From: Hypanus sabinus
Lineage: Eukaryota
Direction: 5' to 3'
DNA: 64,000 nt
Assembly (NCBI RefSeq): GCF_030144855.1
Contig: NC_082729.1
Coordinates: 23,002,001 to 23,066,000, forward strand
Shown here: in pieces, positions 5,181 to 45,289 of the stretch
Layout: each line of letters opens with the position of its first letter
Position numbering within the stretch: position 1 is the first letter of the stretch
Translations under genes and position numbers: made by a program
The notes under the pieces: model-generated
The model's database searches: none
Told to the model about the DNA's origin: nothing
What the model saw: only the letters and a program-made list of their open reading frames with translations

Positions 5181-6104
5181 TCCCATCACACACTCCCGAG
5201 GTCAGACACAGACTGAAGCTCCCTCCACACCGTCCCATCACACACTCCCGGGGTCAGACACAGAGTGAAGCTCCCTCCACACCGTCCCATCACACACTCC
5301 CGGGGTCAGACACAGAGTGAAGCTCCCTCCACACCGACCCATCTCACACTCCCGGGGTCAGACACAGAGTGAAGCTCCCTCCACACCGTCCCATCACACA
5401 CTCCCGGGGTCAGACACAGAGTGAAGCTCCCTCCACACCGTCCCATCTCACACTCCCGGGGTCAGACACAGAGTGAAGCTCCCTCCACACCGTCCCATCA
5501 CACACTCCCGGGGTCAGACACAGAGTGAAACTCCCTCCACACCGTCCCATCACACACTCCCGGGGTCAGACACAGAGCGAAGCTCCCTCCACACCGTCCC
5601 ATCACACTCTCCCGGGGTCAGACACAGAGTGAAGCTCCCTCCACACCGTCCCATCACACACTCCTGGGGTCAGACACAGAGTGAAGCTCCCTCCACATTC
5701 TCCCATCACACACTCCTGGGGTCAGACACAGAGTGAAGCTCCCTCCACACTCTCCCATCACACACTCCCGGGGTCAGACACAGAGTGAAGCTCCCTCCAC
5801 ACCGTCCCATCACACACTCCCGGGGTCAGACACAGAGTGAAGCTCCCTCCACACCGTCCCATCACACACTCCTGGGGTCAGACACAGAGTGAAGCTCCCT
5901 CCACACTCTCCCATCACACACTCCTGGGGTCAGACACAGAGTGAAGCTCCCTCCACACGGTCCCATCACACACTCCCGGGGTCAGACACAGAGTGAAGCT
6001 CCCTCCACACCGTCCCATCACACTCTCCCGGGGTCAGACACAGAGTGAAGCTCCCTCCACACGGTCACATCACACACTCCCGGGGTCAGACACAGAGTGG
6101 AGCT
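5181..6104 (+). repeat. 52-bp satellite array A1 (~18 units)
   Basis: Unit ACACCGTCCCATCACACACTCCCGGGGTCAGACACAGAGTGAAGCTCCCTCC; period 52 (e.g. 5221 vs 5273). Confidence 0.97.
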
Positions 6105-6627
6105 GTTCTGAATGCGCTGGGAGACATCGAGGAAAAACTGCTGTATGAAGGTCGTGAGTTACTTGGAATTGGTTTGAAACATCTCTTGGACATCTAAGTG
6201 AGCGGCTGCTTTAGAGTGGAAGCTTCGTTTGGAGTTTTTCTGCCAGTTTGGACGGGATTCGTTGACGGCTGCGAACTGCGTAGCACCCGGCTGTGGCCGC
6301 TGGCGACTCGCCAGGAAGCAGGTTCGCTCCCAAAACCGGAGACAAACGCCGTTGTTCCCCCACTGACATCGGGGCAACCTCCTTCCATCTTTATTGTCAT
6401 GACTCACGGTCCATGTAGGAGCCAAAGCATCGCTTGATACGTCTCGACCTCTCACGGCCTAGAAGTTCTGCAGGACTAACGGAGCGTTTCCTGGCGTTGG
6501 AATCTCTGGCACGGAGCCAGCAAGGTGCTGTCGAGTACAAACTTTTCCAGCCAGTTACTCAACTCGCTCCAGGACTTTATAAACAGCACCATCACCGTAT
6601 CATTCTCGATTCGGACACAGAAGCAAA

Positions 6628-7980
6628 ATGCCGGACCGGTCTGCCGGGAGTCGCGGGCCTTCGGGGAGTTATGCAAAGGCGGCTGCCTCTCCAGCCTCGG
6701 ACAACGCCCTGTTTCGGTCGGTGAAAGTTGAACGCGGGGTGCAATGTATTTTGCGAGCTGGAACTACCCTGGAAAAGTGCGCGGAGGCCATGGAGGACTT
6801 GTTGGGGAGAGATGGTGTTTTGGCCGCTGAGAAAGAGTTCGTGAAGGCGGTGTTTTATCTGAGGAATGATGAGTTGGTGCATCGGGCCCTCAGTAGAGGG
6901 AACACGGTGGAGAACATCTTTTTACAGATGGAGCTAGTGACAGCTCCCACACAACGCATCGTCCTCGGTCACGTAAAGCCTTTCATCCCCAACGAGGACC
7001 TGCTTCCCGCACTAACACGCTTGGGGCAAGTACGGTCAGAAATAACTGCCATCGGGCACAAATTCAGGAGACGCACCCTCCGGACCGTAATCTCTTTCCG
7101 GCGACAGGTATTCATGAAACTGGAAAAGGAGGACAAAGTTGAGGGCCGGTTTACCGTCCGGCACGAGGGGGTAGATTATCAGGTGTATTGGAGCTCTGAG
7201 CGCCCACGGTGCCATGCGTGCGGGGAGGTGGGGCACTTTCGGAGGGACTGTCCTAGCGCCCAAAAACTCAGGGAGTCCACTTCGGGAACTAGTGCCCCAG
7301 CTGACTCTGCCCCTGATCCCATTCCTGCTCCTACACCTCTTCCGGACCCTGCTCCTGCCCCTGACCCTGTCTCTAACCCTGTCCCTATTCCTTCGTCTGT
7401 TCCAGTCTCTGCTCCTACCCCTGTGGTTCAGGCGGGTGATCCTGGGGCTACGTGTGGGGAGGTTCAGGCGAGGGACGGGGTGGAGTCCGGGCGGGGCAAG
7501 AAAGCGAGGAAGAAGTCGAAACACATGAAGAAGTCGGCCCCCGAGACCGCAGAGCTCACGCCCATTTGCCCTGAAGTGGAGCGGGAGGCTCGGGGAAGCG
7601 CACAGTCGGACGGGGTGAGGGAAGCGGAGAGTAACGCTCCATCGGTGAATCCCGCACCTGTGTGCTCCTCCGGCTTGAAGAGGAGAAGGGAATGTTCCCC
7701 CAAGAGGGCAGAGAATGTAGATGAGGGGGAGTCCCAGAAAGGGGTGGGGATCCGGGTGGAAGTTGTGTCTAACCCTGAATCCCCAGATGTAGCCACCAGT
7801 CCTGTTGTGGGTGGTGTGGTTGTGCAGGAAGCTAGCGCTGGGCCTGTTTGCACAACTAAAACAGACCTGGAGCCCTCCACCCAGGACTTCGCAGTAAGCG
7901 CCTCCCTGGAGGCAAATGTATTAAACAGTGTGAGCGGAGAGGAGACCACGCTCTCACTGTCAGCATCAGGCTACCGGTGA
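6628..7980 (+). CDS. Tx1-type ORF1 (nucleic-acid-binding, zinc knuckle); probably continues through frameshifts to ~8650
   Basis: RIVLGHVKPFIPNEDL..ISFRRQVFM (Tx1 ORF1-like), CHACGEVGHFRRDC knuckle, then a Pro-rich tract. Confidence 0.8.
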   Translation: MPDRSAGSRGPSGSYAKAAASPASDNALFRSVKVERGVQCILRAGTTLEKCAEAMEDLLGRDGVLAAEKEFVKAVFYLRNDELVHRALSRGNTVENIFLQMELVTAPTQRIVLGHVKPFIPNEDLLPALTRLGQVRSEITAIGHKFRRRTLRTVISFRRQVFMKLEKEDKVEGRFTVRHEGVDYQVYWSSERPRCHACGEVGHFRRDCPSAQKLRESTSGTSAPADSAPDPIPAPTPLPDPAPAPDPVSNPVPIPSSVPVSAPTPVVQAGDPGATCGEVQARDGVESGRGKKARKKSKHMKKSAPETAELTPICPEVEREARGSAQSDGVREAESNAPSVNPAPVCSSGLKRRRECSPKRAENVDEGESQKGVGIRVEVVSNPESPDVATSPVVGGVVVQEASAGPVCTTKTDLEPSTQDFAVSASLEANVLNSVSGEETTLSLSASGYR

Positions 7981-8654
7981 ATCCCTTGGACCAGAGCTGC
8001 TGGGGTCCCCTTCATGCCTGTCTCCTGGGGAGGGTGATGTAACCTGCATGCCGACCCCATCAACTAATGGCCTGCAGGGAGTCGCTGGGTATTTTCCCTC
8101 CATCGTCGCAACTGTGGGTAAGACTGCTGCGACGGTGGAGCGGGAAGGTATGAGGGAGGTACCTGCTGTGTAGTGTGGGTTACAGGGGCAGCGACCTTAT
8201 ACACCACATGAGGAGGACGGTGGGGAATCTGTCTGCAGTGAGGGGTTGGAGGGAGATTCTATTGATAGCGAGACAATGGACATCCTCACCCCTCCTGAGA
8301 AATCCCCATTGATACCTGTAGAGGAGATCAGAGAGTTTATTCACTCCTCTGTGGGTGCAAAGCATCGGCCTAAATTAGCCTCGCTTCGCTGGCCTAGCAT
8401 GCCGAGGCTGGTGAAGTCCCTGAGGGTCATCCTCAGACGGAAGGGGAAGGGGAAGAGGAATGCTGTGTCAGGGAATGACAGACGGCAGCTGAAATCCTTC
8501 CTGGATGACCTGGTGCGGGACATCAGGATGAAAAGCAGCCTCGCTCATTCGGGAGATGGTGGGTCACAGGGTAGCGATGGTAGCAGTCGGGCCCGGAAAG
8601 GAAAGAATGTTCTTGGTTTTCTTCCAGATAGTGCGGCGCCACCGCTCTCAGTGG

Positions 8655-11130
8655 GAAGGTTCCTCCATCACGGACCCCGACGAAATTACCAAAGAAGTCC
8701 TCACTTTCTATCGGTCCTTATTCTCACCGGATCCGTCAAATGCGGGCGGGTCTGGGAAGATTTGCCAAAGGTCAACCCAGAAGACGCAGCGCGTCTGGAC
8801 GCCTCCCTGACTGGGGAGGAGCTGTCTACTGCCCTTCGGCAACTCCGGAGGGGTAAGTCCCCTGGCTTAGATGGTCTGAGTGTGGAGTTTTATCAGGCTT
8901 TTTGGGATGTCCTGGGGGTTGATTACAGCCTTGTTCTAGGGGAGAGACTAGCCACCGGGGAATTGCCCCTCTCATGGCGGAGAGCTGTCGTGGTCCTACT
9001 GCCCAAGAAGGGAGACCTCCGCCTGCTAAAGAACTGGCGCCCGGTCTCCCTCTTGTGCGAGGACTGCAAGATCTTCGCCCGGGCAATGGCCAACCGTCTT
9101 GGTTCAGTACTGAGACAGGTGATTCATCCTGACCAATCTTACACAGTCCCGGGGCGCTCCATCCAGGACAATGTCCACCTAGTACGGGACCTGATCCACC
9201 TGCACCAGGAGACTGGGTCCCCGGCAGCGTTTCTTTCTCTTGACCAGGAGAAGGCGTTTGACCGGGTAGACCACAGTTTCCTGGTGGGCACTCTGCAGGC
9301 CTTTGGGCTCGGACCACACTTTGTGGCCCGAGTTCGGCTCCTCTACTCTGCCGCAGAGTGCCTTGTTAAGGTCAATGGATCACTGGCAGCGCCCATTCCC
9401 TTCAGGAGAGGAGTACGTCAGGGATGCCCCATGTCCGGTCAATTGTACGCGATCTGTGTCGAGCCATTCCTCAGCCTTCTTCGGCGAAGGCTGACAGGTC
9501 TGGTTCTGCGTGAACCGGACATGGAGGTCGTCCTCTCGGCCTACGCCGATGATGTACTCCTCATGATGACAGATCCCAATGACCTGCGGAGGATGAGCGA
9601 GTGCCAAGACGTTTTCTCGGCGGCATCCTCCGCCAGGATCAACTGGGCGAAATGTTCCGGACTCTTAGTGGGTCAGTGGCAGATGGACTCCCGGCCGGAG
9701 GAGATGAGAGCTTTTGAGTGGAGTACTAGGCATCTCCTCTATCTGGGATTCTACCTGAGTCCTTCTGGGGAGACCTGGCTGGCGAACTGGCAGGACCTGG
9801 AGACGAAAGTCATGCTGGGGAGCTGGTCAGGCCTTCTCAGGGTGCTTTCCTATCGAGGCTGGGTGGTGTTCATAAACCAGCTGGTGGCCTCCATGTTGTG
9901 GTATCGGATGATCACCTTGGCCCATCCTGCCCCGTTTGTTGCAAGAATGCAGAGGAAGTTAGTGGACTCCTTCTGGGGCAACAGGAAACACTGGGTCTCT
10001 GCAGCGGTCTTAAGTCTCCCAGTGGGAGAGGGCGGACAGTCGCTGGTGTGCGTCCGAACGCAGCTGGCGGCTCTCCGCCTCAGGACTCTGCAGAGATTCC
10101 TGTACGCCGAGCAGCCTCCCAGGTGGCACGTGTTGGCGACTTTCTTCCTCCGTAGGGGCTGCTGTCTTCACGAAGACATGCGGTTACCACCGGCGGGCGT
10201 CAGCCGTACTGCTTTGCGGAGTCTGCCCGGCTTCTATCAGGACCTACTGAGAGTCTGGAACATGGTCGCCTCAGGCCGGGAATCCCCTCCTCCGGCGGAG
10301 GGCGGGGTCCTGGCCGACCCTTGCCCTACCTCAGTGGCTGTCGGTGCGGCTCAGTTGTGTGGACCGACTCAGGCCGAGCTGCTTGTCGGGCCCAGGCCCC
10401 GCAATCTTCTCCGGGAGCCGTGTCCACACAACTTGAGCCGTCTCTCATCGATACCCACGGTCCCATTCAGGGATGCAAGTAGGAGGTATCTGTATGGGCT
10501 GCTACTCCACACCCTCCACTTCCTTGCCCTTGTCCACCGTCCCGACACGCCATGGCGGTCGGTCCTTCCACCCGGAGGTGAGGAGGGTCCCCACTGGAAG
10601 TCCCTTTATGCCGGGGTTCTTCCCATGCACCTGGGGGATCTCGCCTGGAGGGTGTTGCATAGAGCGGTGCCCTGCAACAAGTTTTTCAGTTTGTACACGG
10701 ATCTCCCACCCTCTCCAGCCACTTCTGCGGGCTGGAGGAGACCGTGTACCACATGTACTTGGAGTGTGAGAGGCTGCTGCCCCTTTTTGCGTATTTACGT
10801 GGGCTGCTTCTCACCTTCTGGCTACATGTTAGCCCCACCCTTTTTATATAGGGTCATCCAGTAAGGAAGGGGGCATGGAGGGATGAGGATGTCCTAGTCA
10901 ACTTGCTCCTGGGGCTGGCGAAATCCGCCATCCAAGGGTCTTGCAAACGGGTGGCGGGAGGATCTCCCCGGGCAGACTGCCTGGCAATGTTTAGGGGGTA
11001 TGTTCATGCCCGGGTAAATATTGAAAAAGAACACGCGCAGTCCACAGCGGCCTTGGAGGAGTTTCGAGACCGTTGGGCTCCGCGGGGTGTAAATGTCATC
11101 GTGGATAGAGATGGCAACATTCTGGTGTAA
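8655..11130 (+). pseudogene. Tx1 ORF2 remnant: RT and C-terminus, APE endonuclease absent, frameshifted
   Basis: GSSITDPDEITKEVLTFYRSLFS linker, KSPGLDG, NWRPVSLL, DQEKAFD, GVRQGCPMS, YADD, HFCGLEETVYHMYLEC; stop at 11128-11130; frameshifts near 8740, 10710 and 10850. Confidence 0.85.
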
Positions 11131-11904
11131 TGTCTATTGTCTATTTGTAGTGCAGTAATTGTGTTTGCCACTGTTTTGTATATATTGTACAGCACCGATT
11201 TTTGTAATAAAGGATTTTGCAAAAAAAAAGGAGTCAGACACAGAGTATAAAAATTGTTTTTACTCTGTCTTCTGTCTGCCTGTTTTGTTCCCCGTCTGGA
11301 TAAAACCTGCCAGCCCCTCTCCTCGCCCTACAGAAATAAACTCATTTTGCAGGATTGGTGGTGAGGAGGGAGGGAGTGCTCCCCCCCCCCCCCCCACCTT
11401 GTCGAGCAGGCGGACGTGGGCTTTCTCCGTGCTCAACAATTCACAATCTAGTACAGTACTCCCGACTGTCCGGGGGGCGGCGGGGGGCAGAAGGAGGAGA
11501 GATAGTGGGGAGAAGACAGGGGAGAGAAATGGCAGTTGAAGTTTAATCCAGATGAACATGAGGCATTTTAAAAAAAAGGATCCAGTGATTTCACAGTGTA
11601 TACGATGAATAAACTCTCCTCGGGCTTCCAGCCGGGCACAGGAATTGATTTTAACTGATGTTTGGATTGCAAACTCTGGATGAAGTCAGGCGTTTAACTT
11701 TGCAGGATGAAAAGTTCGGGGAAAGTATCCAGTAAATGGCAGGAATGTAAGGAGCGCTGATGAACAATAGGAGGATGTTGGGGTCAAGTTCACAGCTCCC
11801 TGAAAGTGGTCACATGAGTAGATAGACTGATAACAGAGAACAGTAGAGCACAGGAATGGGCCATTCGGCCCACAATGCTGTGCTGATCCAGCTAAATCAA
11901 ACCC

Positions 11905-12460
11905 TTCCAAATAAACTAATCCCTTTTACCTTCTCTATGTCTATATCCCTCTCTCTCCTAACATCCACGTGCTTATCCAAACGTTTCTTAAAAGCCTCTA
12001 ATGCATTTGCCACGACCACCAGAACAGGCAGCACATTCCGGGCATCAACCACTCCCTGAGTAAAAAACTTACCCCTCACATCCTCTTTGAACCTATCCCC
12101 TCTCACTTTCAATGCATGCCCTCTGGTAGACATTTCTACCCTGGGAAAAAGATACTCCCTGTCTATTCTATCTATGAGTCTCATAATCTTATAAACCTCA
12201 ATCAAATCTCCCCTGAGCCTCTGCCGCTCCAACGAAAACACTCCACGTTTGTCCAGCTTCTCCCGATAGCACATGCCCTCTAAACCAGGCAGCATCCTGG
12301 TAAAGCTCTTCTGCTCCCTCTCCAAAGCTCAGCATCCTTTGCCGGGTGACCAGGACTGCATGCATTACTCCAGATGTGGCCTAACCTGACTTTTATAAAC
12401 TCGTATCTCAACCTCTTGAACTCAGTCCGCTGTGAACTAAAAGCAAACATCCCATAAGCC
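11905..12460 (-). mobile_element. CR1 LINE 3' fragment
   Basis: FTRMLPGLEG..RLRGDLIEVYKIM..TRGHALK..FFTQ; paralogous copies at ~28322-28545 (-), 51130-51382 (-) and 53600-54160 (+). Confidence 0.85.
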
Positions 12461-12812
12461 ACATTTCTTATCTTCCCAACAATCTGCTGCCTCGACACCC
12501 CGCACTATGGATCTCAATCAATGTAAATTAACGCCGCAATATAGATTCAAACCCAGAGAAACGACCGCGCCTGGCCCCAGTCGGAAGCCCCTCGGACCTT
12601 GAACCGATACGTCTTTCCCTCGCAGTTTATTCATGTGAAGGCAGCATCGGTGGGGCCCCGCACTCCCCACACATCGTGAATCAGCTGAGGATATCCATCA
12701 GCTACACCTTTTTTAATCAACTCATAGAAGCGCTCATAGAATCTGAGCAGCAAAACCGCTTGTTCGTATCGATGCTGTGTGATCAGTTCCCCCGTTATGA
12801 GTCAGTACCATG

Positions 12813-13850
12813 AAAGATTGGTAAGATTGTTGATGACACAAAGGTTGGGGCTGTTGTGGTTAGTCCGGAGGGTTGACAGAGGCTACAGCTCGACATCAAC
12901 AGGATGCAGAACTGGGTTGAGAAGTGGCAAACGGAGTTCAGCCCAGACAAGTGTGAAATGATTCATACCAGTCGGTCAAACTTGAAGAGAGAACATAATA
13001 TTAACAGTAAGTGTGCAGAATCAGTGAGATCTTGGGGTCCATGTCCCTAGGACACTCAAAGCTGCTGTGCGGGTTGACAATGTTGTTCAGAAGGCGTATG
13101 GTGGGTTGGCCTTCATCAACTGTGGAATGAAGATCAACAGCCACAAGGTAATGTTACATCTATATGTAATACTCTGGGAAAGGTTTCACTGCTAATGTAG
13201 TGGTTGTTCTGTAGCAGCAGTGTTTGGGTCATGAGATAGAGATAACAGGAGCTTTTGAATATGCACTACCCGAAGAAGGGAGTGTTTTTTCTTGTTGTGT
13301 GCCTGAGAACAAGGTGATCCGAGTCTTTTGTTTGGCCAAAGATGAAGAGAGAATTTGCCTGAAAGGAGAAGTTGTAGCCAGCAGGATGGAGTGGACTTGG
13401 AGTTGAGAAAGTCCGGGGAGATTGATGGAGGACCAATGGCAGGAAAACCGTGAGCTCCAACTTGTGCACATTAGAGAGTTTCATTAAAATGGGCCGTTTT
13501 CTTTTTGTTTTCTTACTGACCCTTTAGTCAAATTAAGAATTATGAAGCTAACTCGTTTAATTCCATATGGTGTACTGTCAGTTATTTCGTTGTTCTGGCT
13601 CGTAATGGGGTAACGGATCAAACAGCATCCACACCATTTGCTCCTCAGATTCAACCCGTTTGTGGGCCAGGGACTGTCTTCCCTAGGCTAACACCGCCGG
13701 CCGAACCTGAGGGTGACATATATAACACCTTGGTCAGACCCCACTTGGAGTACTGTGCTCAGTTCTGGTCACAGGAAGGTTGTGGTTTCTATAGAGAGAG
13801 TGCAGAGGAGATTCACAAGGATGTTGCCTGGATTGGGGAGCGTGCCTTAC
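12813..13850 (+). mobile_element. CR1 LINE fragment interrupted by a solo LTR
   Basis: Degenerate CR1 RT C-terminal sequence ending ..VMLHLY, resuming after the LTR as NTLVRPHLEYCAQFWS. Confidence 0.8.
13165..13718. mobile_element. Solo LTR (554 bp, TGT...ACA, TATA target duplication)
   Basis: TATA|TGTAAT...GTGACA|TATA; removing it restores the CR1 frame. A 4-bp TSD is compatible with a Gypsy-type or ERV1-type LTR. Orientation unknown. Confidence 0.75.
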
Positions 13851-13966
13851 GGAATGGGGGAGACATCGTAGAGGGATATCTGTGCCGAGCAAACTGCTGA
13901 ATTCAGCTGAATCCTTTCTGTACGTGACCCCTATCCCACCATTCCCTGCACGATCATGTGTCTCCA

Positions 13967-14470
13967 TACACTCAGTGGCAACTTTATTCGATCCCTCCTG
14001 TACTGAATAAACCGGCCACTGAGTGTATGCTTGTGATCTGCTGCTCTGTCCCGTCCACTTCAAGGTTTGACGTGTTGTGGTCTCTGTGGTAACGAGTGGA
14101 TATTGGAGATACTGCCACCTTCCTGACAGCTTTAGCCAGTCTGGCCATTCTCCTCTGATCTCTCTCATTAACAAGGCTTTTTCTCCCACTCAACTCAATG
14201 GGTGTTTTTCATTTGTTTTTGCACCATTCTCTGTAAACTCCACAGACCGATGTGTCTGAAAATCCCAGGAAATCAGCAGTTTCTGTGATACTCAGACCAC
14301 CCCATCTGGCACCAATAATGCATCCTACAGTCAAAGTCACTTCGATCACATTTCCTCCCACATTCCCGTGTTTGGTCTGAACATCTTGACCATGTCTTCG
14401 TGCTTTTATGCACTGGGTTGCTGCCTCGTGATTGGCTGATTAGATACTTGCACTAACGAAGAGTCCACTG
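13967..14470 (-). mobile_element. Tc1-family deletion derivative plus 61-bp TIR hairpin
   Basis: GRKSLVNERDQRRMARL..ISTRY resembles a Tc1 transposase N-terminus; TACACTCAGTGGC...GCCACTGAGTGTA at 13967-14027; copies at ~48945-49317 and 57166-57660. Confidence 0.7.
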
Positions 14471-14489
14471 TGTGTAGAAGTCTCGAGTG

Positions 14490-19092: not shown

Positions 19093-20188
19093 TCCCATCA
19101 CACACTCCCGAGGTCAGACACAGAGTGAATCTCCCTCCACACCGTCCCATCACACACTCCCGGGGTCAGACACAGAGTGAAGCTCCCTCCACACTGTCCC
19201 ATCACACACTCCCGGGGTCAGACACAGAGTGAAGCTCCCTCCACACCGTCCCATCACACACTCCCGGGGTCAGACACAGAGTGAAACTCCCTCCACACTG
19301 TCCCATCACACACTCCCGGGGTCAGACACAGAGTGAAGCTCCCTCCACACTGTCCCATCACACACTCCCGGGGTCAGACACAGAGTGAAGCTCCCTCCAC
19401 AACGTCCCATCACACACTCCCGGGGTCAGACACAGAGTGAAGCTCCCTCCACACTGTCCCATCACACACTCTCGGGGTCAGACACAGAGTGAAACTCCCT
19501 CCACACCGTCCCATCGCACACTCCCGGGGTCAGACACAGGGTGAAGTTCCCTCCACACCATCCCATCACACACTCCCTGGGTCAGACACAGAGTGAAACT
19601 CCCTCCACACCGTCCCATCACACACTCCCGGGGTCAGACACAGAGTGAAGCTCCCTCCACACCGTCCCATCACACACTCCCGGGGTCAGACACAGAGTGA
19701 AGCTCCCTCCACACTGTCCCATCACACACTCTCGGGGTCAGACACAGAGTGAAACTCCCTCCACACCGTCCCATCGCACACTCCCGGGGTCAGACACAGG
19801 GTGAAGTTCCCTCCACACCATCCCATCACACACTCCCTGGGTCAGACACAGAGTGAAACTCCCTCCACACCGTCCCATCACACACTCCCGGGGTCAGACA
19901 CAGAGTGAAACTCCCTCCACACTGTCCCATCACACACTCCCGGGGTCAGACACAGAGTGAAGCTCCCTCCACACCGTCCCATCACACACTCTCGGGGTCA
20001 GACACAGAGTGAAACTCCCTCCACACCGTCCCATCGCACACTCCCGGGGTCAGACACAGGGTGAAGTTCCCTCCACACCATCCCATCACACACTCCCTGG
20101 GTCAGACACAGAGTGAAGCTCCCTCCACACCGTCCCATCACACACTCCCGGGGTCAGACACAGAGTGAAGCTCCCTCCACACCGTCCC
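19093..20188 (+). repeat. 52-bp satellite array A2 (~21 units)
   Basis: Same unit as A1, directly upstream of copy 2. Confidence 0.97.
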
Positions 20189-20619
20189 GTCACTGTCTTT
20201 GCTCCCACTCCCCACAATCCATCTGCCCTTTCCTGGGCCGTGGGCTTGTTTTCAAAGCGATCGTTTCTCTTTTTTGCCTCCAAAGTGCTCCCGACTTCTG
20301 CTTTAATTTTACTGGTACAGTGTTTGTGGCAAACAATGTTCATAACACAATGTTTATATTAGGATAGAGGATGAAGATGAAATAAATAAAATATAAATTC
20401 AAAAGATTCAAAGTACATTTATCATCAAAGGCTGAATAAATTATAAAACCTGGAGATTTGTTTGCTTCCAGGAAGCTGCAAGGGAAGGAACTCGAAAGAA
20501 CCCAATTAAAATATAAAACCCACCCCCAATGGGCACAGAGAGAAGGGGTGGGGGGGACCTTGCAAACAATGGAAGCGAGCATTCCAAAACAGATTCAATC
20601 CTTGGATCCAAATTCCCGG

Positions 20620-21641: not shown

Positions 21642-24600
21642 TTCACGCTGTATCTGACCCCGGGAGTGTGTGATGGGACGGTGTGGAGGGAGATTCACTC
21701 TGTGTCTGACCCCGGGAGTGTGTGATGGGACAGTGTGGAGGGAGATTCACTCTGTGTCTGACCCCGGGAGTCTGTGATGGGACAGTGTGGAGGGAGCTTC
21801 ACTCTGTGTCTGACCCCGGGAGTGTGTGATGGGACGGTGTGGAGGGAGATTCACTCTGTGTCGACCCCGGGAGTGTGTGATGGGACGGTGTGGAGGGAGA
21901 TTCACTCTGTGTATGACCCCGGAAGTGTGAGATGGGACGGTGTGGAGGGAGCTTCACTCTGTGTCTGACCCCGGGAGTGTGTGATGGGACGGTGTGGAGG
22001 GAGCTTCACTCTGTGTCTGATCCCGGGAGTGTGTGATGGGACGGTGTCTGACCCCGGGAGTGTGTGATGGGACGGTGTGGAGGGAGCTTCACTCTGTGTC
22101 TGATCCCGGGAGTGTGTGATGGGACGGTGTCTGACCCCGGGAGTGTGTGATGGGACGGTGTGGAGGGAGCTTCACTCTGTGTCTGATCCCGGGAGTGTGT
22201 GATGGGACGGTGTCTGACCCCGGGAGTGTGTGATGGGACGGTGTGAAGGGAGCTTCACTCTGTGTCTGACCCCGGGAGTGTGTGATGGGACGGTGTGGAG
22301 GGAGCTTCACTCTGTGTCTGACCCCGGGAGTGTGTGATGGGACGGTGTGGAGGGAGCTTCACCCTGTGTCTGACCCCGGGAGTGTGTGATGGGACGGTGT
22401 GGAGGGAGATTCACTCTGTGTCTGACCCCGGGAGTGTGTGATGGGACGGTGTGGAGGGAGATTCACTCTGTGTCTGACCCCGGGAGTGTGTGATGGGACG
22501 GTGTGGAGGGAGCTTCACTCTGTGTCTGATCCCGGGAGTGTGTGATGGGACGGTGTGGAGGGAGCTTCACTCTGTGTCTGACCCCGGGAGTGTGTGATGG
22601 GACGGTGTGGAGGGAGCTTCACTCTGTGTCTGATCCCGGGAGTGTGTGATGGGACGGTGTCTGACCCCGGGAGTGTGTGATGGGACGGTGTGGAGGGAGC
22701 TTCACTCTGTGTCTGACCCCGGGAGTGTGTGATGGGACGGTGTTGAGGGAGCTTCACTCTGTGTCTGATCCCGGGAGAGTGTGATGGGACGGTGTCTGAC
22801 CCCGGGAGTGTGTGATAGGACGGTGTGGAGGGAGCTTCACTCTGTGTCTGACCCCGGGAGTGTGTGATGGGACGGTGTGGAGGGAGCTTCACTCTGTGTC
22901 TGACCCTGGGAGTGTGTGATGGGACGGTGTGGAGGGAGCTTCACTCTGTGTCTGACCCCGGGAGTGTGTGATGGGACGGTGTCTGACCCCGGGAGTGTGT
23001 GATGGGACGGTGTGGAGGGAGCTTCACTCTGTGTCTGACCCCGGGAGTGTGTGATGGGACGGTGTGGAGGGAGCTTCACTCTATGTCTGACCCTGGGAGT
23101 GTGTGATGGGACGGTGTGGAGGGAGCTTCACTCTGTGTCTGACCCCGGGAGTGTGTGATGGGACGGTGTGGAGGGAGATTCACTCTGTGTCTGACCCCGG
23201 GAGTGTGTGATGGGACGGTGTGGAGGAAGATTCACTCTGTGTCTGACCCCGGGAGTGTGTGATGGGACGGTGTGGAGGGAGCTTCACTCTGTGTCTGACC
23301 CCGGGAGTGTGTGATGGGACGGTGTGGAGGGAGCTTCACTCTGTGTCTGATCCCGGGAGTGTGTGATGGGACGGTGTGGAGGGAGCTTCACTCTGTGTCT
23401 GATCCTGGGAGTGTGTGATGGGACGGTGTGGAGGGAGCTTCACTCTGTGTCTGACCCCGGGAGTGTGTGATGGGACGGTGTGGAGGGAGATTCACTCTGT
23501 GTCTGACCCCGGGAGTGTGTGATGGGACGGTGTGGAGGGAGATTCACTCTGTGTCTGACCCCGGGAGTGTGTGATGGGACGGTTTGGAGGGAGCTTCACT
23601 CTGTCTGACCCCGGGAGTGTGTGATGGGACGGTGTGGAGGGAGCTTCACTCTGTGTCTGATCCCGGGAGTGTGTGATGGGACGGTGTCTGACCCCGGGAG
23701 TGTGTGATGGGACGGTGTGGAGGGAGCTTCACTCTGTGTCTGATCCCGGGAGTGTGTGATGGGACGGTGTCTGACCCCGGGAGTGTGTGATGGGACGGTG
23801 TGGAGGGAGCTTCACTCTGTGTCTGACCCCGGGAGTGTGTGATGGGACGGTGTGGAGGGAGATTCACTCTGTGTCTGACCCCGGGAGTGTGTGATGGGAC
23901 GGTGTGGAGGGAGATTCACTCTGTGTCTGACCCCGGGAGTGTGTGATGGGACGGTGTGGAGGGAGCTTCACTCTGTGTCTGACCCCGGGAGTGTGTGATG
24001 GGACGGTGTGGAGGGAGCTTCACTCTGTGTCTGATCCCGGGAGTGTGTGATGGGACGGTGTCTGACCCCGGGAGTGTGTGATGGGACGGTGTGGAGGGAG
24101 CTTCACTCTGTGTCTGACCCCGGGAGTGTGTGATGGGACGGTGTTGAGGGAGCTTCACTCTGTGTCTGATCCCGGAAGTGTGTGATGGGACGGTGTCTGA
24201 CCCCGGGAGTGTGTGATGGGACGGTGTGGAGGGAGCTTCACTCTGTGTCTGACCCCGGCAGTGTGTGATGGGACGGTGTGGAGGGAGCTTCACTCTGTGT
24301 CTGACCCCGGGAGTGTGTGATGGGACGGTGTGGAGGGAGCTTCACTCTGTGTCTGACCCCGGGAGTGTGTGATGGGACGGTGTGGAGGGAGCTTCACTCT
24401 GTGTCTGACCCCGGGAGTGTGTGATGGGACGGTGTGGAGGGAGCTTCACCCTGTGTCTGACCCCGGGAGTGTGTGATGGGACAGTGTGGAGGGAGCTTCA
24501 CTCTGTGTCTGACCCCGGGAGTGTGTGATGGGACGGTGTGGAGGGAGCTGCACTCTGTGTCTGACCCCGGGAGTGTGTGATGGGACGGTGTGGAGGGAGC

Positions 24601-24726
24601 TTCACTCTGTGTGTGATGGGACGGTGTGGAGGGAGTTTCACCCTGTGTCTGACCCCGGGAGTGTGTGATGGGACGGTGTGGAGGGAGTTTCACTCTGTGT
24701 CTGACCCCGGGAAGTGTGTGATGGGA
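21642..24726 (-). repeat. 52-bp satellite array A3 (~3.1 kb, inverted, with 31-bp deletion variants)
   Basis: Reverse complement of the unit; abuts the upstream block of + strand copy 3. Confidence 0.97.
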
Positions 24727-35148: not shown

Positions 35149-36525
35149 GCTGAGCCTGGAGGGGAAGATATTGTGGAGTTGAGGGTGATTGGGAATGGAA
35201 GGAGGGGGCAAGAAGAGGAAAGGAAGGAGATGGGTGTGGGAAAGAGACAGGGAGAGAGAGGGAGGGAAAAGAGGGAAGATGGGGTCAAAAGGAGAAGAGC
35301 ATGAGAGAGGAGAGGTAGGTGAAAATGATGGAGGATGAAAGAAGATTGAAGGGAGGGGGAGGGTAGAGAGATGGACGGGTAAGGGGAGGAGGCTGGGTGC
35401 TGAAAAACGGAAGGAGGGTCAGATGAGACGGGGAATGGAGGACAGGTGAAGATTGGTTGAAGATAACCGGGGGTGGTGAAGAATAAGGACAGGTAGAGAG
35501 AAGGGAAGAGGAGAGAAATGGGAGAGCGAGTAGGCAACATGAGGGGAGGAGGTGAGGGAAGGAGAACAGGGAGAGTGAAGATGAAAGGGAAAGAGGGAAG
35601 GGGAAGGGAGAACGGGATGGGGATGAGGGAAGGAGAGGGGGAGGAGAAAAGGGGAGGCGAAGAGGGAAGAGGCAGGGGAACATGAGGAGAGAAGGATGAG
35701 GAAAGGGGAGGGTGACAGAGATGGGGAGGAGGAGCAGGAAGAAAGAGGGTGAGAAGGGGAAAGGAAGAGGAGGAAGTGGAGTGGATGGGTGGACATGAGA
35801 GGAAGGGGTGGAGGAGAAAGGGAAGGGAAGGAGGAGGATGTGGGAAGGGGAGGGTGGGGAAGAGGAGGCTGAGGAAAACAGAAGGGATGGAGGAGGGAAG
35901 GGAGGATGAGGAGGGAAGGGGAAGATGAAGAAGGAGAGGAGGAGAAGAGGAGGAGGAGGAGAAGGGGAGGAGGAGGGAAGGGGAAGGGAGGAGGAGTGGA
36001 TAAGGAGGGCGAAGAGGAGGAGGAATAGGTGGAAGCATTGCATAGGAGACGGAAGGGTGACGGGAAGGAGGGAGGGGGTAAAATGGGGTGTGGGGAAGGG
36101 AGGTTGCAGAACGTGGCAGGGACAAGCAAAGAGAAAGGGGGACGGAGGATGTGAGGTGAAGTGGGGGGAGGGTTGAATGCAGGAACGGTGGAAAGAATAA
36201 GGAGGGAAAGGGGAAGGTGAGTGGCAAAGGGTGGAGGAGGCAGGGGAAGAGATGGAGAGGAAGGAAGAAAAGGAAAGAGTGGGGGGAAGCTTTGAAGGGG
36301 GTGGGAAGGAGAGGGGCATAGATAGAGAGAGGAGGGGTGGAGGGAAAAGAGAGAGAGGATGGAAGTCACAACCATCTCCTGCCTCACTGCCCCTCCTGCA
36401 CCACGGTGCTCACTCCTCACGAGCCCTCACACACCGCATTGGTTCTCCTCCCTGACAGACCCTCCAGCCCCACAGCAGAGACGGGAAATGGACGGGGATG
36501 GGGAAGAAAGTGGCCTTCAGTGTGA

Positions 36526-39500
36526 CACTCCCCCCTCACCTCCTCACCCTCAGCACGGCACTCCCTCCTCACCTCCTCACCCTCAGCACGGCACTCCCTC
36601 CTCACCTCCTCACCCGCAGCACGGCACTCCCTCCTCACCTCCTCACCCTCAGCACGGCACGCCCTCCTCACCCTCAGCACGGCACTCCGCCCTCACGTCC
36701 TCATCCGCAGCACGGCACTCACTCCTCACACCCTCACCCTCAGCACGGCACTCCGCCCTCACGTCCTCACCCTCAGCACGACACTCCCTCCTCACCTCCT
36801 CACCCTCAGCACGGCACTCCCCCCTCACCTCCTCACCCTCAGCACGACACTCCCTCCTCACCTCCTCACCCTCAGCACGTCACTCCCTCCTCACCCACTC
36901 ACCCTCAGCCCGGCACTCCCTCCTCACACCCTCAGCACGTCACTCCCTCCTCACCTCCTCACCCTCAGCAAGGCACTCCCTCCTCACCCTCAGCATGTCA
37001 CTCCCTCCTCACCTCCTCACCCTCAGCACGGCACTCCCTCCTCACCCCATCACCCGCAGCACGTCACTCCCTCCTCACCTCCTCACCCGCAGCACGTCAC
37101 TCCCTCCTCACCTCCTCACCCTCAGCACGACACTCCCTCCTCACCTCCTCACCCTCAGCACGGCACTCCCACCTCACCCCCTCACCCTCAGCACGTCACT
37201 CCCTCCTCACCTCCTCACCCTCAGCACGACACTCCCTCCTCACCCCCTCACCCTCAGCACGTCACTCCCTCCTCACCTCCTCACCCTCAGCACGGCACTC
37301 CCTCCTCACCTCCTCACCCTCAGCACGGCACTCCCTCCTCACCTCCTCACCCTCAGCACGGCACTCCCTCCTCACCTCCTCACCCTCAGCATGTCACTCC
37401 CTCCTCACCCACTCACCCTCAGCCCGGCACTCCCTCCTCACACCCTCAGCACGTCACTCCCTCCTCACCCACTCACCCTCAGCCCGGCACTCCCTCCTCA
37501 CACCCTCAGCACGTCACTCCCTCCTCACCTCCTCACCCTCAGCAAGGCACTCCCTCCTCACCCTCAGCATGTCACTCCCTCCTCACCCACTCACCCTCAG
37601 CCCGGCACTCCCTCCTCACACCCTCAGCACGTCACTCCCTCCTCACCCACTCACCCTCAGCCCGGCACTCCCTCCTCACACCCTCAGCACGTCACTCCCT
37701 CCTCACCTCCTCACCCGCAGCACGACACTCCCTCCTCACCTCCTCACCCTCAGCACGACACTCCCTCCTCACCTCCTCACCCTCAGCACGTCACTCCCTC
37801 CTCACCTCCTCACCCTCAGCACGTCACTCCCTCCTCACCTCCTCACCCTCAGCACGACACTCCCTCCTCACCTCCTCACCCTCAGCACGACACTCCCTCC
37901 TCACCTCCTCACCCTCAGCACGTCACTCCCTCCTCACCTCCTCACCCTCAGCACGTCACTCCCTCCTCACCTCCTCACCCTCAGCACGACACTCCCTCCT
38001 CACCCCCTCACCCTCAGCACGTCACTCCCTCCTCACCTCCTCACCCGCAGCACGACACTCCCTCCTCACCTCCTCACCCTCAGCACGACACTCCCTCCTC
38101 ACCTCCTCACCCTCAGCACGTCACTCCCTCCTCACCTCCTCACCCTCAGCACGTCACTCCCTCCTCACCTCCTCACCCTCAGCACGACACTCCCTCCTCA
38201 CCTCCTCACCCTCAGCACGTCACTCCCTCCTCACCTCCTCACCCTCAGCATGTCACTCCCTCCTCACCTCCTCACCCTCAGCACGTCACTCCCTCCTCAC
38301 CTCCTCACCCTCAGCCCGGCACTCCCTCCTCACCTCCTCACCCTCAGCACGATACTCCCTCCTCACACCCTCAGCACGTCACTCCCTCCTCACCTCCTCA
38401 CCCTCAGCACGTCACTCCCTCCTCACCACACCCTCAGAACGGCACTCCCCCCTCACCTCCTCACCCTCAGCCCGGCACTCCCTCCTCACCTCCTCACCCT
38501 CAGCACGACACTCCCTCCTCACACCCTCAGCACGTCACTCCCTCCTCACCTCCTCACCCTCAGCACGTCACTCCCTCCTCACCACACCCTCAGAACGGCA
38601 CTCCCCCCTCACCTCCTCACCCTCAGCACGGCACTCCCTCCTCACCTCCTCACCCTCAGCACGTCACTCCCTCCTCACCTCCTCACCCTCAGCACGACAC
38701 TCCCTCCTCACACCCTCAGCACGTCACTCCCTCCTCACCTCCTCACCCTCAGCACGTCACTCCCTCCTCACCACACCCTCAGAACGGCACTCCCCCCTCA
38801 CCTCCTCACCCTCAGCACGGCACTCCCTCCTCACCCCATCACCCGCAGCACGGCACCCCCACCTCACCACCTCACCCTCAGCACGGCACTCCCTCCTCAC
38901 CTCCTCACGCTCAGCACGGCACTCCCCCCTCACCTCCTCACCCTCAACACGATACTCCCTCCTCACCTCCTCACCCTCAGCACGACACTCCCTCCTCACC
39001 TCCTCACCCTCAGCACGGCACTCCCTCCTCACCTCCTCACCCTCAGCACGGCACTCCCTCCTCACCTCCTCACCCTCAGCACGGCACTCCCCCCTCACCT
39101 CCTCACCCTCAACACGATACTCCCTCCTCACCTCCTCACGCTCAGCACGGCACTCCCTCCTCACCCCATCACCCGCAGCACGGCACTCCCTCCTCACCTC
39201 CTCACCCTCAGCACGGCACTAACTCCTCACCCCCTCACCCTCAGCACGGCACTCCCTCCTCACCTCACCCTCAGCCCGGCACTCCCTCCTCACACCCTCA
39301 GCACGACACTCCCTCCTCACCTCACCCTCAGCCCGGCACTCCCTCCTCACACCCTCAGCACGACACTCCCTCCTCACCTCCTCACCCTCAGCACGTCACT
39401 CCCTCACCACCTCCTCACCCTCAGCACGGCACTCCCTCCTCACCCTCAGCACGTCACTCCCTCCTCACCTCCTCACCCTCAGCACGTCACTCCCTCTTCA

Positions 39501-42500
39501 CCTCCTCACCCTCAGCACGGCACTCCCTCCTCACCCTCAGCACGTCACTCCCTCCTCACCTCCTCACCCTCAGCACGACACTCCCTCCTCACACCCTCAG
39601 CACGTCACTCCCTCCTCACCTCCTCACCCTCAGCACGGCACTCCCTCCTCACCGCCTCACCCTCAGCACGACACTCCCCCATCACCACACCCTCAGAACG
39701 GCACTCCCTCCTCACCTCCTCACCCTCAACACGACACTCCATCCTAACTTCCTCACCCTCAGCACGGCACTCCCTCCTCACCTCACCCTCAGCCCGGCAC
39801 TCCCTCCTCACACCCTCAGCACGACACTCCCTCCTCACCTCACCCTCAGCCCGGCACTCCCTCTTCACACCCTCAGCACGACACTCCCTCCTCACCTCCT
39901 CACCCTCAGCACGTCACTCCCTCTTCACCTCCTCACCCTCAGCACGGCACTCCCTCCTCACCCTCAGCACGTCACTCCCTCCTCACCTCCTCACCCTCAG
40001 CACGTCACTCCCTCTTCACCTCCTCACCCTCAGCACGGCACTCCCTCCTCACCCTCAGCACGTCACTCCCTCTTCACCTCCTCACCCTCAGCACGACACT
40101 CCCTCCTCACACCCTCAGCACGTCACTCCCTCCTCACCTCCTCACCCTCAGCACGTCACTCCCTCCTCACCTCACCCTCAGCACGACACTCCCTCCTCAC
40201 CGCCTCACCCTCAGCACGACACTCCCTCCTCACCACACCCTCAGAACGGCACTCCCCCCTCACCTCCTCACCCTCAGCACGACACTCCCTCCTCACCTCC
40301 TCACCCTCAGCACGGCACTCCCTCCTCACCTCCTCACCCTCAGCACGGCACTCCGCCCTCACGTCCTCACCCGCAGCACGGCACTCCCTCCTCACCTCCT
40401 CACCCTCAGCACGACACTCCCCCCCTCACCACACCCTCAGAACGGCACTCCCTCCTCACCTCCTCACCCTCAGCACGGCACTCCCTCCTCACCTCCTCAC
40501 CCTCAACACGACTCTCCATCCTAACCTCTTCACCCTCAGCACGACACTCCCCCCTCACCACACCCTCAGCACGACACTCCCCCCTCACCTCCTCACCCTC
40601 AGCACGGCACTCTCTCCTCACCCCCTCACCCTCAGCACGGCACTCCCCCCTCACCTCCTCACCCTCAGCGCGGCACTCCCTCCTCACCTCCTCACGCTCA
40701 GCACGGCACTCCCTCCTCACCCTCAGCACGTCACTCCCCACTCACCTCCTCACCCTCAGCACGGCACTCCCTCCTCACCTCCTCACCCTCAGCACGGCAC
40801 TCCCTTCTCACCCTCAGCACGTCACTCCTCACCTCCTCACCCTCAGCACGACACTCCCTCCTCACCTCCTCACCCTCAGCACGGCACTCCCTCCTCACCT
40901 CCTCACCCTCAGCACGGCACTCCGCCCTCACGTCCTCACCCGCAGCACGGCACTCCCTCCTCACCTCCTCACCCTCAGCACGACACTCCCCCCCTCACCA
41001 CACCCTCAGAACGGCACTCCCTCCTCACCTCCTCACCCTCAGCACGGCACTCCCTCCTCACCTCCTCACCCTCAACACGACTCTCCATCCTAACCTCTTC
41101 ACCCTCAGCACGACACTCCCCCCTCACCACACCCTCAGCACGACACTCCCCCCTCACCTCCTCACCCTCAGCACGGCACTCTCTCCTCACCCCCTCACCC
41201 TCAGCACGGCACTCCCCCCTCACCTCCTCACCCTCAGCGCGGCACTCCCTCCTCACCTCCTCACGCTCAGCACGGCACTCCCTCCTCACCCTCAGCACGT
41301 CACTCCCCACTCACCTCCTCACCCTCAGCACGGCACTCCCTCCTCACCTCCTCACCCTCAGCACGGCACTCCCTTCTCACCCTCAGCACGTCACTCCTCA
41401 CCTCCTCACCCTCAGCACGGCACTCCCTCCTCACCTCCTCACCCTCAGCACGACACTCCCTCCTCACCTCCTCACCCTCAGCACGGCACTCCCACCTCAC
41501 CCCCTCACCCTCAGCACGGCACTCCCTCCTCACCTCCTCACCCTCAGCACGGCACTCCCCCCTCACCTCCTCACCCTCAGCACGGCACTCCCTCCTCACC
41601 TCCTCACCCTCATCACGGCACTCCCCCCTCACCTCCTCACCCTCAGCACGGCACTCCCCCCTCACCTCCTCACCCTAAGCATGTCACTCCCCCTCACCTC
41701 CTCACCCTCAGCACGACACTCCCCCCTCACCTCCTCACCCTCAGCACGGCACTCCCCCCTCACCTCCTCACCCTAAGCATGTCACTCCCCCTCACCTCCT
41801 CACCCTCAACACGGCACTCCCCCCTCACCTCCTCACCCTCAGCACGGCACTCCCTCCTCACCTCCTCACCCTCAGCACGGCACTCCCCCCTCACCTCCTC
41901 ACCCTCAACACGGCACTCCCCCCTCACCTCCTCACCCTCAACACGGCACTCCCCCCTCACCTCCTCACCCTAAGCATGTCACTCCCCCTCACCTCCTCAC
42001 CCTCAGCACGACACTCCCTCCTCACCTCCTCACCCTCAGCACGGCACTCCCCCCTCACCTCCTCACCCTCAACACGACACTCCCTCCTCACCTCCTCACC
42101 CTCAGCACGGCACTCCCCCCTCACCTCCTCACGCTCCGCACGGCACTCCCTCCTCACCCTCAGCATGGCACTCCCCCCTCACCTCCTCACCCTCAGCACG
42201 TCACTCCCACCTCACCTCCTCACCCTCAGCATGTCACTCCCCCTCACCTCCTCACCCTCAGCACGTCACTCCCTCCTCACCTCCTCACCCTCAGCACGTC
42301 ACTCCCCCCTCACCTCCTCACCCTCAGCATGTCACTCCCCCCTCACCTCACCCTCAGCACGTCAATCCCCCCTCACCTCCTCACCCTCAGCACGTCACTC
42401 CCCCCTCACCTCACCCTCAGCACGTCAATCCCCCCTCACCTCCTCACCCTCAGCACGGCACTCCCTCCTCACCTCCTCACCCTCAGCACGGCACTCCCTC

Positions 42501-42723
42501 CTCACCTCCTCACCCTCAGCACGGCACTCCCTCCTCACCCTCAGCACGGCACTCCCCCCTCACCTCCTCACCCTCAGCATGTCACTCCCCCTCACCTCCT
42601 CACCCTCAGCACGGCACTCCCCACTCACCTCCTCACCCTCAGCACGGCACTCCCTCCTCACCTCCTCACCCTCAGCACGGCACGCCCTCCTCACCTCCTC
42701 ACCCTCAGCACGGCACTCCCTCC
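36526..42723 (+). repeat. 33-bp minisatellite (~6.2 kb, roughly 200 variant units) in the intron of copy 4
   Basis: Unit CACGGCACTC(CCTCCTCA)2CCCTCAG with 25-33-bp variants; an internal 569-bp higher-order duplication is shown by identical ORFs at 40406 and 40975. Confidence 0.97.
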
Positions 42724-43818
42724 GCACTGAAATGAACGCAGTGCACTCCCCCATCCTCACCTCCCCAACACCACCCCACCTCCTCTCCCTCCCCACCATT
42801 CATCATCTGCTGTGGGCCCCTAGGGACCACAGCTCCTGCATTCCTTCCTGGGCCCCCACCGACTCACCTTGGAGCCTGCTCTCCCTCTCGATGAAGTTCA
42901 GCCTCCCCGGAATCTCTGGCTCACTCCGTCCCCCCGGGCAGCTCGGGAGAGTTGGACTCAGATCCCAAACTGCTGCGACCACAGCAACCAATGCTGAAGA
43001 TGAACTGTGCAGAAACGAACGGAAGGGCTGTCCGCAGTCCTTTATTAACACATTAGTATTTCTTCATCACTTTTTTTTAAATCTCCGGTTTATTAGCTCA
43101 GTTCCTCAAACTGAATCAGATGGGGACGGCAAAGAGAAACCACAGGAGTTCCGGAAAGAGAGAAAAAGGGGTAAATATCCCATCACACACTCCCGGGGTC
43201 AGACACAGAGTGAAGCTCCCTCCACACCGTCCCATCACACACTCCCGGGGTCAGACACAGAGTGAAACTCCCTCCACACCGTCCCATCACACACTCCCGG
43301 GGTCAGACACAGAGTGAAGCTCCCTCCACACCGTCCCATCACACACTCCCGGGGTCAGGCACAGAGTGAAGCTCCCTCCACATCGTCCCATCACACACTC
43401 CCGGGGTCAGACACAGAGTGAAGCTCCCTCCACACCGTCCCATCACACACTCCCGGAGTCAGACACAGAGTGAAGCTCCCTCCACACTGTCCCATCACAC
43501 ACTCCCGGGGTCAGGCACAGAGTGAAGCTCCTTCCACACCGTCCCATCACACACTCCCGGGGTCAGACAAGTGTGAAGCTCCCTCCACACCGTCCCATCA
43601 CACACTCCCGGGGTCAGACACAGAGTGAATCTCCCTCCACACTGTCCCATCACACACTCCCGGGGTCAGGCACAGAGTGAAGCTCCCTCCACACCGTCCC
43701 ATCACACACTCCCGGGGTCAGACACAGAGTGAAGCTCCCTCCACACCGTCCCATCACACACTCCCGGGGGTCAGACACTGAGTGAAGCTCCCTCCACACC
43801 GTCCCATCACACACTCCC

Positions 43819-44143
43819 CTGCGGCTGGCGAAATCCGCCATCCGTGGGTCTTGGAAACGGGTGGCGGGACGATCTCCCCGGGCAGACTGCCTGGCAATGT
43901 TTAGGGGGTATGTTCGTGCCTGGGTAAATATTGAAAAAGAACACGCGCAGTCCACGGCGACCTTAGAGGAGTTTCAAGACCGTTGGGCTCCGCGGGGAGT
44001 AAATGCCATCGTAGATAGGGATGGCAACATTCTGGTGTAATGTCTATTGTCTATTTGTAGTGCAGTAATTGTGTTTGCCACTGTTTTGTATATATTGTAT
44101 AGCACTGATATTTGTAATAAAGGATTTTGTAATTTTAAAAAAA
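43819..44143 (+). mobile_element. 5'-truncated Tx1 copy (~325 bp)
   Basis: Matches 10909-11229; junctions CACACTCCC|...AAAAAAA|GGGTCAGAC. Confidence 0.93.
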
Positions 44144-44660
44144 GGGTCAGACGCAGAGTGAAGCTCCCTCCACACCGTCCCATCACACACTCCCGGGGTC
44201 AGACACAGAGTGAAGCTCCCTCCACACTGTCCCATCACACACTCCCGGGGTCAGACACAGAGTGAAGCTCCCTCCACACTGTCCCATCACACACTCCCGG
44301 GGTCGGACACAGAGTGAAGCTCCCCCCACACTGTCCCATCACACACTCCCGGGGTTAGACACAGAGTGAAACTCCCTCCGCACCGTCCCATCACACACTC
44401 CCGGGGTCAGACACAGAGTGAATCTCCCTCCACACCGTCCCATCACACACTCCCGGGGTCAGACAGAGTGAAGCTCCCTCCACACCGTCCCATCACACAC
44501 TCCCGGGGTCAGACACAGAGTGAATCTCCCTCCACACCGTCCCATCACACACTCCCGGGGTCAGACACAGAGTGAAGCTCCCTCCACACCGTCCCATCAC
44601 TCACTCCGGGGGTCAGACACAGAGTGAATCTCCCTCCACACCGTCCCATCACACACTCCC

Positions 44661-45109
44661 TTTTTGCATATTTGCGTGGGCTGCTTCTCGCCTTCTGGCT
44701 GCATTTTAGTCCCACCCTGTTTATATATGGTCATCCAGTAAGGAAGGGGGCATGGAGGGATGAGGATGTCCTAGTCAACTTGCTCCTGGGGCTGGCGAAA
44801 TCCGCCATCCGTGGGTCTTGGAAACGGGTGGCGGGAGGATCTCCCCGGGCAGACTGCCTGGCAATGTTTAGGGGGTATGTTCGTGCCCGGGTAACTATTG
44901 AAAAGGAACACGCGCAGTCCACAGCAGCCTTGGAGGAGTTTCGAGACCGTTGGGCTCCGCGGGGAGTAAATGCCATCGTAGATAGGGATGGCAACATTCT
45001 GGTGTAATGTCTATTGTCTATTTGTAGTGCAGTAATTGTGTTTGCCACTGTTTTGTATATATTGTATAGCAGCGAAATTTGTAATAAAGGATTTTGTAAT
45101 AAAAAAAAA
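44661..45109 (+). mobile_element. 5'-truncated Tx1 copy (~450 bp)
   Basis: Matches 10784-11229; junctions CACACTCCC|...A9|GGGGTCAGAC; ORF2 C-terminus open to 45007. Confidence 0.93.
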
Positions 45110-45289
45110 GGGGTCAGACACAGAGTGAAGCTCCCTCTACACCGTCCCATCAGACACTCTCGGGGTCAGACACAGAGTGAAGCTCCCTCCACACCGTCCC
45201 ATCACACACTCCCGGGGTCAGACACAGAGTGAAGCTCCCTCCACACCATCCCATCACACACTCCCGGGGTCAGACACAGAGTGAAGCTG

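Follow-up and report, generated by a model that had tools for sequence, protein, structure and literature searches.

The question raised by this locus is whether a transposable element has taken one nucleotide step of a tandem repeat as its site of insertion. The analysed stretch (64 kb in total; positions 23,002,001 to 23,066,000 of contig NC_082729.1, forward strand, assembly GCF_030144855.1 of the stingray Hypanus sabinus; hereafter the window) contains one long and two short copies of a Tx1-like long interspersed nuclear element (LINE), all of them lying in arrays of a 52-bp satellite. The step at which they are inserted lies between CCC and GGGG of CACACTCCC^GGGGTCAGAC, and the orientation is always the same. 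On the sequence evidence, it is probable that the copies belong to a Tx1-clade family of stingrays and mantas that inserts preferentially, and probably specifically, at this one step. Because what appear to be three separate insertions at one satellite nucleotide are combined with close kinship to Tx1, the element is very probably a site-specific member of that clade.

The copies were located through the motif TGTAATAAAGGATTTTG, which is found exactly three times in the window, each time on the + strand, against a chance expectation of 0.03. A short A-run comes next in each case, and after it the identical phase of the satellite unit (3/3). The joints are as follows:

11229/11230, + strand: 3' joint of the long copy, A9 joined to GGAGTCAGAC
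44143/44144, + strand: 3' joint of short copy 1, A7 joined to GGGTCAGAC
45109/45110, + strand: 3' joint of short copy 2, A9 joined to GGGGTCAGAC

The poly(A) is thus joined at the CCC^GGGG step in every case, with + copies in + units, so that flank, nucleotide and orientation agree in all three window copies; AATAAA precedes the A7-A9 run by 9-15 nt in each. The window holds 72 + units and 58 - units of the satellite (approximately 10.6% of its bases), and from these counts the probability that a non-specific element would make three satellite insertions in one phase and one orientation is about 1e-6 or less.

The 5' ends and the flanks of the three copies are described by the following features:

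43819..44143, + strand: short copy 1, 5'-truncated, last ~325 bp of the element, tail TTTTGTAATTTT followed by A7
44661..45109, + strand: short copy 2, 5'-truncated, last ~449 bp of the element, tail TTTTGTAAT followed by A9
6082..6098, + strand: upstream 17-bp apparent target-site duplication of the long copy, GGGGTCAGACACAGAGT, possibly extending to 6104
11230..11246, + strand: 17 bp of satellite downstream of the long copy, GGAGTCAGACACAGAGT, beyond which the DNA is no longer satellite

In both short copies the element sequence starts immediately past CACACTCCC (43818/43819 and 44660/44661), at truncation points equivalent to ~10909 (short copy 1) and ~10784 (short copy 2) of the long copy. 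Their 5' joints show 1-3 nt of C microhomology, and the upstream satellite is intact up to CCC in both. Around the long copy, 6082-6098 and 11230-11246 match at 16 of 17 positions, and the match on the 5' side could reach 23 bp; directly past the duplication lie 272 bp (11247-11518) that are unique in the window. The first-pass annotation had described three copies in one orientation with poly(A) at one satellite position, short copies starting right after the same sequence with different truncations, and a duplication of at least 17 bp (up to 23 bp on the 5' side) around the long copy; all of this was reproduced here.

Assignment to the Tx1 clade, also proposed in that annotation, is supported by two comparisons of the protein sequence. 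Among named proteins the best match is that to the Xenopus Tx1 149-kDa protein (YTX2_XENLA; E 3e-204, 55% identity), and in a maximum-likelihood tree of Tx1-like sequences, calculated without a non-Tx1 outgroup, the reverse transcriptase (RT) from the window forms a clade with Xenopus Tx1L and with copies from sea turtles and a sturgeon (support 100/100), separate from the Tx1-like sequences of teleosts, paddlefish and alligator. Annotated relatives of open reading frame (ORF) 1 or ORF2 exist in Hemitrygon akajei, Hypanus sabinus and Mobula birostris. The organisation of the long copy was assigned as follows:

6099..11229, + strand: long defective Tx1-like LINE copy, exact 5' end between 6099 and 6105
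6628..8632, + strand: ORF1 with CCHC zinc knuckle (Pfam zf-CCHC), open over 6628-7980, frameshift near 7955
8632..8655, + strand: internal deletion joint; ~394 N-terminal ORF2 residues, including the apurinic/apyrimidinic-type endonuclease (APE) domain, are gone
8655..11130, + strand: ORF2 remnant (linker, RT and C-terminal domain) from three-frame translation, frameshifts near 8750 and 10715, stop 11128-11130
11131..11229, + strand: 3' untranslated region (90 bp) and tail, AATAAA at 11206-11211, A9 at 11221-11229

The 5' leader comprises ~530 bp. An ORF1-like protein of Mobula birostris (P0121, 637 aa) is matched by 6766-7962 and, in a second frame, by 7952-8632 with ~70% identity; from this two-frame alignment it follows that ORF1 once ran to ~8650 and is now frameshifted, with an original length of ~640 aa judging from the Mobula homologue. 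A homology search with ORF1 returned ray, hagfish and unnamed matches only, and similarity to the Xenopus ORF1 was not among them. A novel ORF2 N-terminus in place of APE had been considered for 7980-8650 and was rejected, that segment being the frameshifted C-terminus of ORF1. The Xenopus Tx1 ORF2 (P0004) matches 8741-11112 in tblastn, with its C-terminal residues 1051-1292 aligned to 10376-11112, and the RT of the remnant is recognised as Pfam RVT_1 (E 6e-39). Homology to the Tx1 and turtle ORF2 proteins begins at their residue ~395-398, corresponding to window position 8655; full-length relatives of ORF2 carry PF03372, and no APE match was found anywhere in the window. Since the endonuclease region is missing and the frame is disrupted, the long copy is dead. 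If the deletion came before the insertion, this copy was mobilised in trans.

For the insertion itself, the following course is proposed. The APE-type endonuclease of the family would nick the bottom strand at 5'-GACCCC^GGGAGT-3', and the freed 3'-OH would prime reverse transcription on the poly(A) without base pairing. In the truncated copies, the top strand would be cut opposite the nick, in the centre of the CCCGGG palindrome, which would leave no duplication, and the 5' end would be joined via the 1-3 nt of microhomology; in the long copy, a top-strand cut 17 nt downstream would give rise to the 17-bp duplication. As had been pointed out earlier, the target is without a T-run able to pair with poly(A): the poly(A) abuts GGGG, and the primer strand ends in ...GACCCC-3', which cannot pair with the tail. 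For this reason the site is more probably picked by the protein than by a read-through extension of the RNA. The position of both truncated 5' joints at CCC/GGGG points to breakage of the two strands in the middle of CCCGGG; an exactly one-unit duplication in a tandem repeat would, however, look identical to no duplication. We infer that the endonuclease sets the insertion site and that the site preference holds genome-wide, and we infer the nick at GACCCC^GGGAGT likewise, since the endonuclease is absent from the only long copy. A more far-reaching version, in which the endonuclease would cut both strands bluntly at the centre of CCCGGG in the manner of a restriction enzyme and in which element and satellite would form a long-lived specialist-and-niche pair across stingrays and mantas, is regarded as unlikely.

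How far the three copies count as separate events has to be judged against the arrays in which they lie and against the paralogous arrays of the window, all detected with Tandem Repeats Finder (TRF):

5181..6104, + strand: 52-bp array of arm A, target of the long copy (17.8 copies, 96% matches)
19093..20193, + strand: paralogous 52-bp array of arm B, without insertion
21642..24726, - strand: paralogous 52-bp array of arm C, inverted, without insertion
43178..45292, + strand: 52-bp array of arm D, into which both short copies are inserted
45483..45855, - strand: paralogous 52-bp array of arm D', inverted, without insertion
63598..63999, + strand: paralogous 52-bp array of arm E, without insertion, running off the window

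Satellites amplify anything embedded in them, the window is full of duplicated arms, and the joint contigs described below have multi-copy depth; one or a few ancestral insertions might accordingly have been multiplied by unequal crossing-over or segmental duplication and trimmed later, the joint being simply inherited. The ~6 substitutions relative to the long copy that are common to both short copies would agree with such a descent. We nevertheless consider it decidedly unlikely. There are three different truncation points, and a nested deletion would have needed to stop exactly at CCC twice. The tails differ in blocks rather than by single substitutions (TTTTGC-A9 in the long copy, TTTTGTAAT-A9 in short copy 2, TTTTGTAATTTT-A7 in short copy 1), and polyadenylation starts 9, 12 or 15 nt after AATAAA, a spread that is normal for the cleavage sites of separate transcripts. 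Pairwise identities in the 311 bp common to all three copies are star-like (94.2, 95.2 and 95.8%), the neighbouring short copies resembling each other no more than they resemble the remote long copy. Between the 104-bp 3' flanks of the short copies there are 5 differences, where random unit pairs average 5.5, and no insertion is common to the paralogous arms A, B, C, D, D' and E. Judged from truncation points, tails, flanks, identities and unshared arrays, the three insertions look independent, and the earlier claim of separate insertions is upheld on these grounds.

Two further explanations accept separate events and differ in what selects the site. In one, RNA-DNA homology would be the guide: a read-through satellite extension of the transcript would anneal to nicked satellite, and the joint would be copied, together with a templated A-run, from the master element. 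Read-through and co-transcription are described as strengthening target-specific integration in R2-type and other site-specific LINEs (PMC4494074), and the A-runs here are short (7-9), a templated tail being indistinguishable from an added one by sequence. Priming by homology could, however, take place anywhere in the repeat, whereas both truncated 5' joints lie exactly after CCC, as expected for a site-specific break, and tails at three distances from AATAAA fit post-transcriptional polyadenylation; guidance by RNA is therefore held to be very unlikely. In the other explanation no endonuclease of the element would be involved: the G+C-rich CCCGGG palindrome would be fragile and often broken, and the breaks would be patched with LINE cDNA. 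Insertion into a blunt break would leave the short copies without a target duplication, as they are, and both are 5'-truncated with 5' microhomology. Endonuclease-independent L1 events often lack tails or are 3'-truncated, whereas all three copies here have one orientation and a complete poly(A) 3' end; the long copy has its 17-bp duplication, and none of the 130 satellite units of the window is interrupted by an element of another type. Capture at breaks is consequently considered extremely unlikely, and insertion by a site-selecting Tx1-type protein is preferred over both.

The joint was also looked for in the Logan contigs of four runs (X1, X15, X16 and X17; four organism labels). Contigs bridging element tail, poly(A) and satellite are present in 4/4 runs. 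X16 contains a bridging contig of 158 nt with a depth of 34.9 of 44.8 at the tail, which leads into a diverged satellite variant (GGGATCAGACACAGAGGAAAACTCC...); X1 contains two, with depths of 20.7 and 23.9, and the bridging depth amounts to 58 in X15 and 165 in X17, the range over the four runs being 35-165. The satellite is extremely abundant in other runs, its summed word depth there being 1e5-1e6 versus 1e3-1e4 for the element tail. A search with a 75-aa C-terminal query gave no further genomic copies, and a 24-nt tail motif had no match in metagenome contigs.

Several observations weigh against a satellite-specific family. Non-satellite flanks follow the tail on two contigs of X15, about six of X17 and one of X1, at low depths of 2-5 (2-7 for contigs leading into unique flanks); the copies concerned differ from the long copy by 10-12%. 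Bridging contigs make up 1-12% of the tail depth in X15, X17 and X1, values which are not proportions of copies: the contigs are 46-450 bp long and break at poly(A), and the 17 bp of satellite included in the query layout favour satellite joints, so that the satellite-flank proportion is not readable from depths. Under Kojima's rule a LINE is target-specific if one flank type accompanies >20% of its copies. The directly examined copies number three, and the endonuclease of the family is a predicted one, the only long copy being without APE. The substitutions common to the short copies fit one subfamily, and could also reflect shared history. Finally, the 17-bp duplication ends exactly where the satellite DNA ends; this boundary may be older than the insertion, may have been cut at the insertion or may have arisen later. 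Taken together, the contigs show several ray genomes to contain the joint in multiple copies, and the wider family to be less than absolutely specific. Of the satellite specialisation put forward in the first-pass annotation, the three separate insertions in one orientation at CCC^GGGG thus stand, and exclusiveness is limited by the diverged copies with non-satellite flanks.

The satellite belongs to a series of direct and inverted arms (A, B, C, D, D' and E) that are mutually 85-95% identical. Over ~5 kb, an arm consists of unique DNA, a polypurine tract, a 33-bp satellite and, at the inner end, the 52-bp satellite. Each arm carries one intronless ORF for a G-protein-coupled receptor (GPCR; Pfam 7tm_1), the nearest solved structures being those of the C3a/C5a anaphylatoxin, formyl-peptide and chemerin receptors. 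The polypurine tract and both satellites lie on the 5' side of each GPCR. The intronless rhodopsin-type paralogues are located as follows:

2168-3382, - strand: GPCR paralogue
15946-17256, - strand: GPCR paralogue
26482-27528, + strand: GPCR paralogue
34111-35211, - strand: GPCR paralogue
59518-61464, - strand: GPCR paralogue

Since the arms carry GPCR genes, the satellite resides here in a duplicated gene cluster and not in a transposon; an internal repeat of a transposon, as in the case of Tx1D, was accordingly rejected for this window. Derivation of the satellite from a small RNA gene, the usual kind of Tx1 target, was also rejected (no Rfam match at E up to 1).

Additional features of the arms were recorded. 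Arm A has no array end, centre or inverted partner, and its breakpoint coincides with the end of the apparent target duplication of the LINE. The interval between arms A and B (11518-14998) is, after the 272 unique bp, a mosaic with matches to the stretch on the outer side of arm D' (50667-54548). The centre between the inverted arms D and D' is formed by a palindromic piece of ~150 bp (45293-45447) resembling a miniature inverted-repeat transposable element, with terminal inverted repeats of ~35 bp (CCTGGGCCGTGGGCTTGTTTTCAAAGCGATCG...); parts of it recur at 20233-20330 and 21590-21630, on the two sides of the 1.4-kb centre that separates arms B and C. Array C contains, at 21961-24279, a higher-order 83-bp variant composed of a full 52-bp unit and a 31-bp deleted unit; it occurs in blocks of 98-99% identity, which indicates recent local amplification of the satellite in this array. 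The 33-bp satellite (CACTCCCTCCTCACCTCCTCACCCTCAGCACGG) of one arm is expanded at 36526-42727 to ~195 copies (6.2 kb), compared with 2-5 copies in the paralogous arms, and this expansion yields spurious ORFs of 1500-1800 aa. Two ORFs in the mosaic that separates the arms (31085-31864 and 55107-55742) match RVT_1 and belong to a different LINE family unrelated to the Tx1-like element; the former additionally matches ALKBH8_N.

With regard to what is already established, Tx1L is site-specific, as are many Tx1 families, and has the non-autonomous piggyBac transposon Tx1D as its target; the targets are U2 genes for Keno, microsatellites for Kibi and Koshi of teleosts, and for the crocodilian Tx1 families Mariner, Harbinger or LTR (long terminal repeat) elements or the microsatellites (TC)n, (TTC)n, (TTCC)n and (TTTC)n (PMC4494074). 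The legend of Fig. 3 in Kojima 2015 (PMC4494074) includes 'Sat, satellites' among the known Tx1 targets; families and satellites are unnamed in that legend. On the strength of this legend, the novelty of satellite targeting that had been implied earlier was overstated, and the stingray element is to be placed as a further member of the satellite-targeting Tx1 families and not as a new kind. A literature search yielded no description of a satellite-targeting Tx1 family, or of the 52-bp satellite, in rays. The current picture of the Tx1 clade is left unchanged by the stingray element. Site-specific LINEs are of interest for the way in which a selfish element can persist while sparing genes, and in their endonucleases they provide nickases that are naturally sequence-specific. 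If the proposed site preference is true, the known target range of Tx1 is extended to cartilaginous fishes, a clean target becomes available for work on the reading, by an APE-type endonuclease, of a G+C-rich site unable to pair with poly(A), and a marker is obtained with which satellite turnover in rays can be dated.

Mechanistic precedents also lie outside the clade: the APE-type endonucleases of TRAS1, SART1 and R1, R1-clade LINEs of telomeres and rDNA, are held to nick a tandem repeat precisely (Takahashi and Fujiwara 2002, cited in PMC4494074), and these elements have a fixed orientation. They belong to a different clade, live in insect hosts and use other targets. The 'Sat' families of Kojima 2015, with which comparison was possible via the figure legend only, share with the stingray element a satellite as preferred target. 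Kibi, Koshi and the crocodilian microsatellite families are likewise Tx1-clade elements in tandem repeats, but their targets repeat every 2-4 bp and phase is nearly meaningless in them, whereas the stingray element picks one step of a 52-bp unit; the teleost Tx1 sequences sampled in the tree stand apart from it, the named Kibi and Koshi being compared by description only. The greatest likeness is to Tx1L of Xenopus laevis, the closest named relative (100/100 clade; 55% identity over the RT and C-terminal domain), which also has two ORFs and a poly(A) tail and is also inserted in a single orientation at a fixed site within a repeated sequence. The stingray element differs from it in its host, a cartilaginous fish, and in its target, which is not a DNA transposon but a 52-bp tandem satellite extremely abundant in several ray genomes and situated here beside paralogues of chemoattractant-receptor-like GPCRs.

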